DNA of 64,000 nucleotides, from positions 8,854,275-8,918,274 of the forward strand of contig NC_134032.1 in NCBI RefSeq assembly GCF_964204645.1. The letters run 5' to 3'. The notes beneath the pieces are model-generated. The model did not search any database. It worked only from the letters and a program-made list of their open reading frames with translations, and was not told the origin of the DNA. This stretch comes from Tubulanus polymorphus (Eukaryota > Animalia > Nemertea). Positions 13,792-62,185 of the stretch are shown in pieces. The position numbers and the translations under genes are program-made. Position 1 is the first letter of the stretch. Every line of letters starts with the position of its first letter.

Positions 13792-13863
13792 ATGCCTCGC
13801 GGCGTTCTACCGAACCGGTTTGATCTATCTAAGCATAGAGTGAATACTGAAGATGTATCAGAG
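13792..13863 (+). CDS. Exon 1 (candidate start, [24 protein letters not shown])
   Basis: ATG in gagATG context, strong donor GAG|gtaaga, phase 0 matches exon 2. Confidence 0.55.

Positions 13864-62185: not shown

Follow-up and report, generated by a model that had tools for sequence, protein, structure and literature searches.

A 53-exon gene of the ribbon worm Tubulanus polymorphus predicted to encode a giant mucin-like type II membrane protein with three S1 protease domains

The window analyzed here is a stretch of 64,000 nucleotides from the nemertean Tubulanus polymorphus (NCBI RefSeq assembly GCF_964204645.1, contig NC_134032.1, positions 8,854,275 to 8,918,274), and all positions below are counted from its first letter unless stated otherwise. 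Its + strand carries one gene of 53 coding exons, the last of which lies beyond the window. The gene extends over ~54 kb, with a coding sequence (CDS) of 13,857 nt that specifies 4,618 aa and in which the sole stop is the terminal one; in the curated chain every intron is of the GT-AG type and all 53 exons are open. From the N- to the C-terminus the predicted product comprises a 290-aa tail, a transmembrane (TM) segment, a SEA domain (SEA1), a 1,576-aa mucin region rich in Pro, Thr and Ser (PTS1), a degenerate Cys module, a second SEA domain (SEA2), a 305-aa second mucin region (PTS2) and a protease part. The latter has the order LDLa2-SRCR-SP1-(LDLa-MAM)3-LDLa4-SRCR-SP2-LDLa7-SRCR-SP3, where SP1 to SP3 denote the three protease domains. 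We consider it very likely that this is one protein-coding gene, specifying a single giant membrane protein of type II topology with three S1 domains. The original prediction for this locus, made from the letters alone, had proposed such a single protein with the same domain order, and this proposal is supported by a RefSeq model, an RNA contig, collinearity with a gene of another ribbon worm, Lineus longissimus, and a conserved junction between protease and LDLa domains.

Read by eye, stop-free segments of the + strand show motifs of the LDLa, MAM, SRCR-like and trypsin types, arranged as predicted, and the two mucin repeats stand out as long open frames, one of 1,607 codons at 21929-26752 on the + strand, with an extreme GC skew over the same stretch, and a second at 28307-29374. 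When the Asp exon of SP2 was searched against 1.84 billion representative proteins, it found XP_074657056.1 (three matched stretches), a 2,259-aa RefSeq protein of Tubulanus polymorphus named "uncharacterized". Threaded onto the genome, this protein fits the final 44 exons exactly (100%), starting at 28799 and running up to the stop. The CDS of this model begins at Met 28799 inside the second mucin exon. As its first Met belongs to the PTS2 repeat and no signal sequence is present, the RefSeq model appears to be 5'-truncated; relative to the gene described here it is short of the first 2,359 residues, among them the anchor, both SEA domains and the greater part of the mucin, and the public annotation can be corrected accordingly.

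The part backed by neither RefSeq nor a homologue, 26610-28360, was checked against RNA reads. Four sequencing runs of one study contain the locus. Run X4 yielded one contig of 680 nt with four GT..AG joints (26723 to 26858, 26962 to 27549, 27726 to 28013 and 28173 to 28269), which are exactly the predicted introns 6-9, and this contig extends ~100 nt into PTS2. Splicing in RNA thus connects the end of PTS1 with exon 7, SEA2 and the beginning of PTS2, and because the acceptor at 28269 is joined to SEA2, the exon in which RefSeq starts is an internal exon. Runs X2 and X3 contain unspliced intron sequence and behave as DNA.

The 5' exons were curated by hand against the complete RefSeq model (isoform X9) of a tandem paralogue, LOC141910239. 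Exons 2-6 are collinear with this paralogue at 72-88% identity and with identical splice phases. The start exon encodes MPKRKDDIQVQ, followed directly by the donor GTAAAG, and its equivalent in the paralogue encodes MPKKKDVIDFQ, also followed by GTAAAG; the DNA around it (12170-12678; a 529-bp block) is 75% identical to the exon-1 region of LOC141910239. The start therefore lies at 12516 and not at 13792, where the first exon had been placed before: the latter candidate has a poor acceptor context and, like the rest of intron 1, lacks a counterpart in the 10 kb upstream of the paralogue.

At the 3' end, where the Ser exon of SP3 had been expected beyond the window, 20 kb of downstream sequence was fetched and one remaining exon was found, followed by the stop. 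It occupies the extended coordinate 66034-66225 (C8:8920308-8920499), ~2 kb past the window, and reads GDSGSP; the stop codon lies 10 codons past the conserved W-I of SP3. The in-frame chain of 51 exons proposed originally was right in having no stop between the proteases, but the 35-aa exon 7, which is present in RNA, had been missed and the total comes to 53. The length, given as at least 4,533 aa, becomes 4,618 aa, with 4,555 encoded in the window; the former figure presumably equals 4,555 minus the 11-aa exon 1, plus the 24-aa exon at 13792, minus the 35 aa of exon 7. A home-made gene finder, based on dynamic programming over codon and splice signals, recovered most exons but misread the frame of PTS2, failed to find several MAM, SRCR and SP3 exons, began PTS1 and exon 11 too late and overran the true stop; exact RefSeq threading and curation were used in its place. 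The exons in the window, with the evidence for each, are as follows.

12516..12548, + strand: exon 1, start codon and phase-0 donor GTAAAG; homology to the paralogue start
18190..19111, + strand: exon 2, 307 aa, acidic Tyr-rich cytoplasmic tail and single signal-anchor TM segment; Kyte-Doolittle profile, aligns to paralogue and Lineus tails
19886..19966, + strand: exon 3, juxtamembrane linker; collinear with paralogue residues 198-225
20493..20673, + strand: exon 4, N-terminal half of SEA1; Pfam SEA 6.3e-5, 23.5 bits (half domain), 88% identical to paralogue SEA
21253..21410, + strand: exon 5, C-terminal half of SEA1, with FRNG↓SVIAD across the exon 4/5 junction; paralogue comparison
21996..26723, + strand: exon 6, PTS1 mucin, 1,576 aa, ~124 copies of a 36-bp unit; repeats, RNA joins the 3' end to exon 7
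26858..26962, + strand: exon 7, 35-aa six-Cys module, LDLa-like, phase 1-1; in the spliced RNA contig
27549..27726, + strand: exon 8, N-terminal half of SEA2; Pfam SEA 9.7e-11, 42.2 bits, RNA joints
28013..28173, + strand: exon 9, C-terminal half of SEA2, FRPG↓SIVAT at the junction; RNA joints
28269..29183, + strand: exon 10, PTS2 mucin, 305 aa, 27 copies of a 30-bp (10-aa) unit; repeats, RNA, RefSeq CDS begins within
29278-29385, 29479-29580, + strand: exons 11-12, two LDLa; Pfam, threading
29744-29867, 30416-30517, 30650-30699, + strand: exons 13-15, SRCR-like domain 1; Pfam SRCR_2 at XP_074657056.1 209-294, threading
31123-31294, 31739-32025, 32351-32496, 32945-33101, + strand: exons 16-19, protease SP1; Pfam, threading, alignment
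33360..41229, + strand: exons 20-31, (LDLa-MAM) x3; Pfam MAM x3, threading
33360-33467, 35975-36085, 38862-38964, + strand: the LDLa exons of (LDLa-MAM)3
34241-34407, 34837-34968, 35534-35720, + strand: MAM1 exons
36639-36785, 37320-37484, 38252-38449, + strand: MAM2 exons
39498-39649, 40674-40816, 41022-41229, + strand: MAM3 exons
41571-41681, 41970-42077, 42713-42823, 43160-43270, + strand: exons 32-35, four LDLa; Pfam, threading
43647-43767, 44405-44538, + strand: exons 36-37, SRCR-like domain 2 (degenerate); threading, position homologous to a Lineus SRCR_2 match in the collinear alignment
45061-45232, 45739-46007, 46627-46763, 47220-47382, + strand: exons 38-41, protease SP2; threading, alignment
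48495-48599, 50107-50217, 51474-51593, 52569-52784, 53868-53975, 55822-55938, + strand: exons 42-47, seven LDLa, two of them in exon 45; threading
56869-57007, 57085-57242, + strand: exons 48-49, SRCR-like domain 3; threading, Lineus alignment
58155-58338, 60507-60805, 62046-62185, + strand: exons 50-52, protease SP3; threading, alignment (exon 53 beyond the window)

The N-terminal part has a single hydrophobic segment, which spans residues 284-302 of what exon 2 encodes (Kyte-Doolittle 19-residue maximum 2.64), and the N-terminus itself is hydrophilic. An N-terminal tail followed by a single anchor helix, with no cleavable signal peptide by hydropathy, is the topology of a type II membrane protein. 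Exon 2 by itself has no Pfam match, and as a query it found no homologue among proteins of 169-537 aa, longer proteins falling outside that range. The tail exon (18190-19111) encodes repeated Tyr motifs, and a Tyr-containing motif of the form Y-x-N-P-A-x-S is common to the tail of the Lineus protein (D-H-T-Y-S-N-P-A-V-S-I-E-S in Lineus). A phosphotyrosine-x-Asn site in the tail would presumably suit binding by SH2 domains of the Grb2 type. In intron 2 (19608-19854), just upstream of exon 3, lies a tandem repeat of ~6 copies of a 41-bp unit.

Each of the two SEA domains is divided over two exons, and both junctions conform to FR(N/P)G↓S(V/I)(I/V)A. Exon 8 by itself scores above the Pfam threshold for SEA. 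SEA sites of this G↓S type undergo self-cleavage in matriptase and MUC1. The mucin regions consist of Thr/Ser/Pro repeats (copy numbers from Tandem Repeats Finder), with Ser, Thr and Pro together making up 55.7% of PTS1 and 66.4% of PTS2. With PTS1 as query the sole match among database proteins of 854-2,716 aa was the paralogue LOC141910239. The module encoded by exon 7, between PTS1 and SEA2, has no Pfam match and is devoid of the acidic calcium cage.

In the protease part, Pfam recognizes in XP_074657056.1 three Trypsin (1.1e-160), 15 LDLa, three MAM and an SRCR_2 domain. When 13 protease domains were aligned together with their flanking sequence, the full triads originally claimed for SP1 (TAAHC/DIAIL/GDSGGP) and SP2 (TAGHC/DMAAL/GDSGGP) were confirmed, and the triad of SP3 is likewise intact (TAAHC/DIALV/GDSGSP). 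The nearest solved structures are enteropeptidase 1ekb_B for SP1 (1.2e-54) and SP2 (2.3e-42) and 7wqx_A for SP3 (4.4e-40), with matriptase, TMPRSS2 and hepsin coming next after enteropeptidase. The activation sites read APY↓VVNG in SP1, TSY↓VLNG in SP2 and SPY↓MIGG in SP3, such that the P1 residue is Tyr in all three. Position 189 is Ser in SP1 and SP2, facing Asp189 of the enteropeptidase light chain (1ekb_B), whereas SP3, as judged from the motif alignment, has Thr at this position and an Asp at about position 226. Given Tyr at P1 together with Ser, Ser and Thr rather than Asp at 189, the three domains are probably chymotrypsin/elastase-like and could activate one another. Elsewhere P1 is Tyr at all three sites of the Lineus protein, Phe in Owenia, in Batillaria SP1 and in Dreissena, Met in Octopus and Arg in Batillaria SP2. 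All three Tubulanus domains also carry a C-G-K upstream of the activation site and a Cys in the context P(I/A)C(V/L)P; with this pair, a cleaved domain should stay tethered to the stem.

The last exon of SP1 ends 5 codons past its W-I with a phase-1 donor, GTAGGT, and after an intron of 258 nt the next LDLa exon has a strong phase-1 acceptor and no ATG. The last exon of SP2 likewise ends in phase 1 (donor GTAAGT), and the LDLa exon beyond an intron of 1,112 nt is phase-matched; SP3, by contrast, runs into the stop. Sixteen exons of LDLa/MAM modules and two SRCR exons separate SP1 from SP2, and seven LDLa and an SRCR domain separate SP2 from SP3. A conserved LDLa domain (C-x-F-x-C-x-N) comes within 3-4 residues of the end of the SP1-type domain in Tubulanus, Lineus, Owenia, Batillaria, Dreissena and Octopus, i.e. 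the direct junction from protease to LDLa is kept in six species of three phyla.

The uncharacterized Lineus longissimus gene LOC135503121 (XP_064652550-54) has five isoforms of 2,436-2,676 aa. Residues 130-2258 of XP_074657056.1 align with residues 497-2674 of the Lineus protein in a single BLASTP high-scoring segment pair of 2,221 columns at 40.6% identity. Pfam finds in the Lineus protein 3 Trypsin, 17 LDLa, 3 MAM and 3 SRCR_2 domains, and its N-terminus has a tail, a TM segment, a SEA domain (LRNGSIVAD) and a short PTS region. The tandem paralogue (isoform X9, 1,704 aa) lies on the same strand at C8:8953114-8997787, ~40 kb downstream of the gene end, and has at least 9 isoforms; its order is tail-TM-SEA-PTS, about 10 LDLa, SRCR and one SP3-type protease. 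It looks like the present gene with the interior from SEA2 to SP2 removed. The SP3-type domains of Tubulanus, LOC141910239, Lineus and Owenia (SP2 in the latter) form one clade with support 100/99 in a tree whose root is a drawing midpoint, which is compatible with a protein of at least two protease types having existed before nemerteans and annelids diverged.

Several points weigh against a single gene as drawn here. The RNA comparison covers four of the 52 introns, no single RNA molecule across the whole gene was seen, and short-read contigs are unable to bridge the two PTS exons; an older run, X5, gave no contig on 26610-28360 and next to none of the words of the searched stretch, which does not show the gene to be silent. 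For introns 1-5 the support is homology to the paralogue and not RNA of the locus. Pfam does not recognize exon 7 or the C-terminal halves of the SEA domains (exons 5 and 9) when these are taken alone, and two of the three SRCR-like domains of Tubulanus fall below its threshold. The RefSeq model begins inside PTS2 and so leaves room for an internal start. There could accordingly be two genes, an upstream membrane mucin (tail-TM-SEA-PTS1-SEA2-PTS2) and the RefSeq triple protease starting at the internal Met 28799 within the PTS2 exon; that no database protein of 854-2,716 aa contains this PTS1, and that the repeats cannot be bridged by short reads, would be in keeping with such a division. We regard it as improbable, since the RefSeq product would have neither signal peptide nor anchor although its modules are wholly extracellular, the frame is open upstream of this Met as far as the acceptor that RNA splices to SEA2, and the tail-TM-SEA-PTS part is fused to LDLa-SRCR-SP in the orthologue of Lineus as well as in the paralogue of Tubulanus. 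Even less probable, in our estimate, is that prediction has wrongly merged three tandem protease genes. Multi-protease models can be annotation chimeras, and the junctions of SP1 and SP2 with the following LDLa lie outside the stretch checked by RNA; no transcript ending or starting between protease modules was found, in an RNA comparison that covered 26610-28360. Yet the intron after SP1 is merely 258 nt long and leads to an acceptor without ATG, both junctions have strong phase-matched splice sites, the supposed second and third genes would be devoid of any signal sequence, the SP-to-LDLa junction recurs in the six species, and Lineus is collinear over ~2,200 residues.

A more serious alternative, though still an unlikely one, retains one gene but makes the 4,618-aa form a minor product, with exon skipping giving rise to shorter isoforms with one or two proteases that resemble the paralogue. 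Exons 6, 7, 10-12, 20, 24, 32-35 and 42-47 are of phase 1-1, and SP1 and SP2 each close with an exon that ends in phase 1; as nearly all module exons and the whole SP1 and SP2 cassettes are thus of phase 1-1, shorter in-frame isoforms are possible. The paralogue, with its several annotated isoforms, amounts to the N-terminal part plus an SP3 cassette, and the Lineus gene too has multiple isoforms. Against this, the sole RNA contig seen skips none of the exons that it spans, exon 7 among them, and RefSeq gives a single product at the locus, with all three proteases. That the gene is a decaying duplicate without function deserves hardly any credence: the presence of a tandem paralogue 40 kb downstream and of degenerate modules (exon 7, exon 28 and two SRCR-like domains) might hint at decay, but 53 open exons, introns that are all GT-AG, three intact triads, spliced RNA and a collinear orthologue at 40.6% identity are hard to reconcile with it. 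Taken together, these observations favor the single gene encoding one giant type II protein with three proteases.

The remainder of the window contains several further features. Upstream of the gene are three long intronless open frames, at 1733-3091 (+), 5735-6817 (-) and 8594-9313 (-), of which Pfam assigns one to MFS_1 (6.9e-16), the two others giving weak matches to seven-transmembrane receptors (7tm_1 7e-7; Srv 4.8e-5). Nearly 400 bp of intron 1 (14560-14940) give (IY)n whichever of the three frames is translated, as would be expected of a (TA)-rich repeat, and 3 nt past the donor of exon 17 starts a (GAGAGG)n microsatellite that is perfect over its 113 bp (32028-32140). The last intron in the window holds, at 62230-62770, an interspersed repeat of ~540 bp with at least 40 copies on many contigs at 79-87% identity, which is probably an element resembling a short interspersed nuclear element or a miniature inverted-repeat transposable element.

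If the single giant protein is produced, its composition suggests that the PTS domains would be extended and carry dense O-glycosylation; with ~0.25 nm for each residue, the resulting stalk of some hundreds of nm would hold the protease head far outside the apical membrane. The site might be the apical surface of an epithelium, for example in gut or epidermal mucus, though this is a guess. Self-cleavage of the SEA domains would leave the mucin segment held non-covalently, such that it could be shed under force. Each protease would be a zymogen that remains disulfide-tethered to the stem after the activation cleavage, and the three domains might activate one another or those of neighboring molecules, while LDLa, MAM and SRCR domains could dock substrates or cofactors as in the heavy chain of enteropeptidase. 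Throughout the family, in nemerteans, an annelid and molluscs, P1 is nearly always Tyr or Phe and position 189 is never Asp, so mutual activation of a chymotrypsin-like kind is possible. We therefore tentatively propose, as one possibility that may well prove wrong, a zymogen cascade within one membrane-tethered polypeptide, which would prime itself without an outside trypsin-like activator, and in which the SEA break points flanking PTS1 would allow force or wear to free mucin and active head into the mucus. Were this true, a transmembrane mucin and a protease cascade, which are separate in vertebrates, would be combined in one molecule, illustrating how enzymes may be placed within or beyond the glycocalyx.

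Judging from shared architecture, the gene is an expanded member of an uncharacterized protease family that also occurs in other ribbon worms, annelids and molluscs, and what is special to Tubulanus is the mucin expansion of ~1,900 residues and the second SEA domain. By Pfam, applied to six relatives, the mollusc proteins have the order SEA-Fz-LDLa-SRCR-SP-(LDLa-MAM)3, and Owenia has 2 proteases and 5 MAM domains. Three mollusc models stop directly past (LDLa-MAM)3, in one case with an LDLa that reaches the final residue; such ends suggest that these annotations are truncated and derive from multi-protease genes. The family as delineated here would constitute a conserved spiralian group of multi-protease type II membrane proteins, with enteropeptidase as its nearest characterized relative. 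A literature search for this architecture returned nothing relevant beyond papers on polyserase and enteropeptidase, which agrees with the earlier statement that no characterized protein is known to combine all these parts; the architecture is, however, less singular than it first appeared, as uncharacterized RefSeq orthologues share the order. The significance of the domain order is also limited: invertebrate genomes commonly contain large shuffled mosaics of such modules, and among database entries giant multi-protease models are no rarity (e.g. a gar protein of 4,066 aa, matched in 14 stretches, and TMPRSS9-like and ovochymase-like models).

Among the relatives, Lineus LOC135503121 has the same plan, in the order tail-TM-SEA-PTS-LDLa-SRCR-SP1-(LDLa-MAM)3-LDLa4-SRCR-SP2-LDLa-SRCR-SP3. 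It differs in having a PTS region of ~120 aa, versus 1,576 and 305 aa in Tubulanus, one SEA domain instead of two and three LDLa before the first SRCR, and is ~2,000 residues shorter. LOC141910239 is 72-93% identical in tail, TM segment, SEA1, PTS repeat type, LDLa array, SRCR and SP3-type protease, but has one protease and lacks the SEA2, PTS2, SP1, MAM and SP2 cassettes. Other spiralian relatives (Owenia CAH1799262-type, Dreissena LOC127839977, Octopus LOC115223468, Aplysia LOC101863910 and Batillaria BaRGS_00005864) share a SEA domain, followed further on by LDLa-SRCR-SP leading directly into (LDLa-MAM)3, together with Phe or Tyr at P1 in most and a non-acidic residue at 189. They differ in having Frizzled and/or PKD modules, a short PTS region, and models with one or two proteases, several of which look truncated.

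By its predicted features the Tubulanus protein is a serine protease of the type II transmembrane class (TTSP) and, in the broad sense, a polyserase. Besides the anchor, it has a stem of modules typical of TTSPs (Pfam SEA in exons 4 and 8, 15 LDLa, three MAM and SRCR_2), S1 domains with triads whose closest PDB matches are all TTSPs, and zymogen sites (Y↓VVNG, Y↓VLNG, Y↓MIGG) with a Cys pair that would form the tethering disulfide. Arg or Lys at the activation-site P1, which is typical of mammalian TTSPs although not a defining feature, is absent. As polyserases have at least two S1 domains in one open reading frame, it is relevant that XP_074657056.1 alone spans SP1, SP2 and SP3. Polyserase-1 has a single LDLa stem, abutting protease domains and an inactive third domain. 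This layout is not that of the Tubulanus protein, where the S1 domains are separated by LDLa-MAM or LDLa arrays plus SRCR domains and all three triads are intact. What TMPRSS9/polyserase-1 does share with it is the anchoring in the membrane and the translation of three tandem S1 domains as one product (PMC1435904).

The transmembrane mucins of the MUC1, MUC13 and MUC16 type resemble the Tubulanus protein in their giant single-exon PTS tandem repeat adjoining a SEA domain with the G↓S motif, but they are type I proteins without an enzyme domain, whereas here the anchor is N-terminal and a protease stands at the C-terminal end. MALRD1 has similar alternating MAM-LDLa pairs, those described here being 27-31% identical to MALRD proteins, but it is devoid of protease, SEA or mucin domains. 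Enteropeptidase (TMPRSS15) combines a type II anchor, a mucin-like region, SEA, LDLa, MAM and SRCR domains and a C-terminal S1 domain. Its heavy chain, SEA-LDLa-CUB-MAM-CUB-LDLa-SRCR, contains CUB domains, for which XP_074657056.1 has no match (Pfam E<=0.01). It has one protease, with Asp189 and Lys at P1, whereas the Tubulanus protein has three, with Ser or Thr at 189 and Tyr at P1. The activation sites and S1 pockets of the spiralian family thus point to a chymotrypsin-like logic, unlike that of enteropeptidase.

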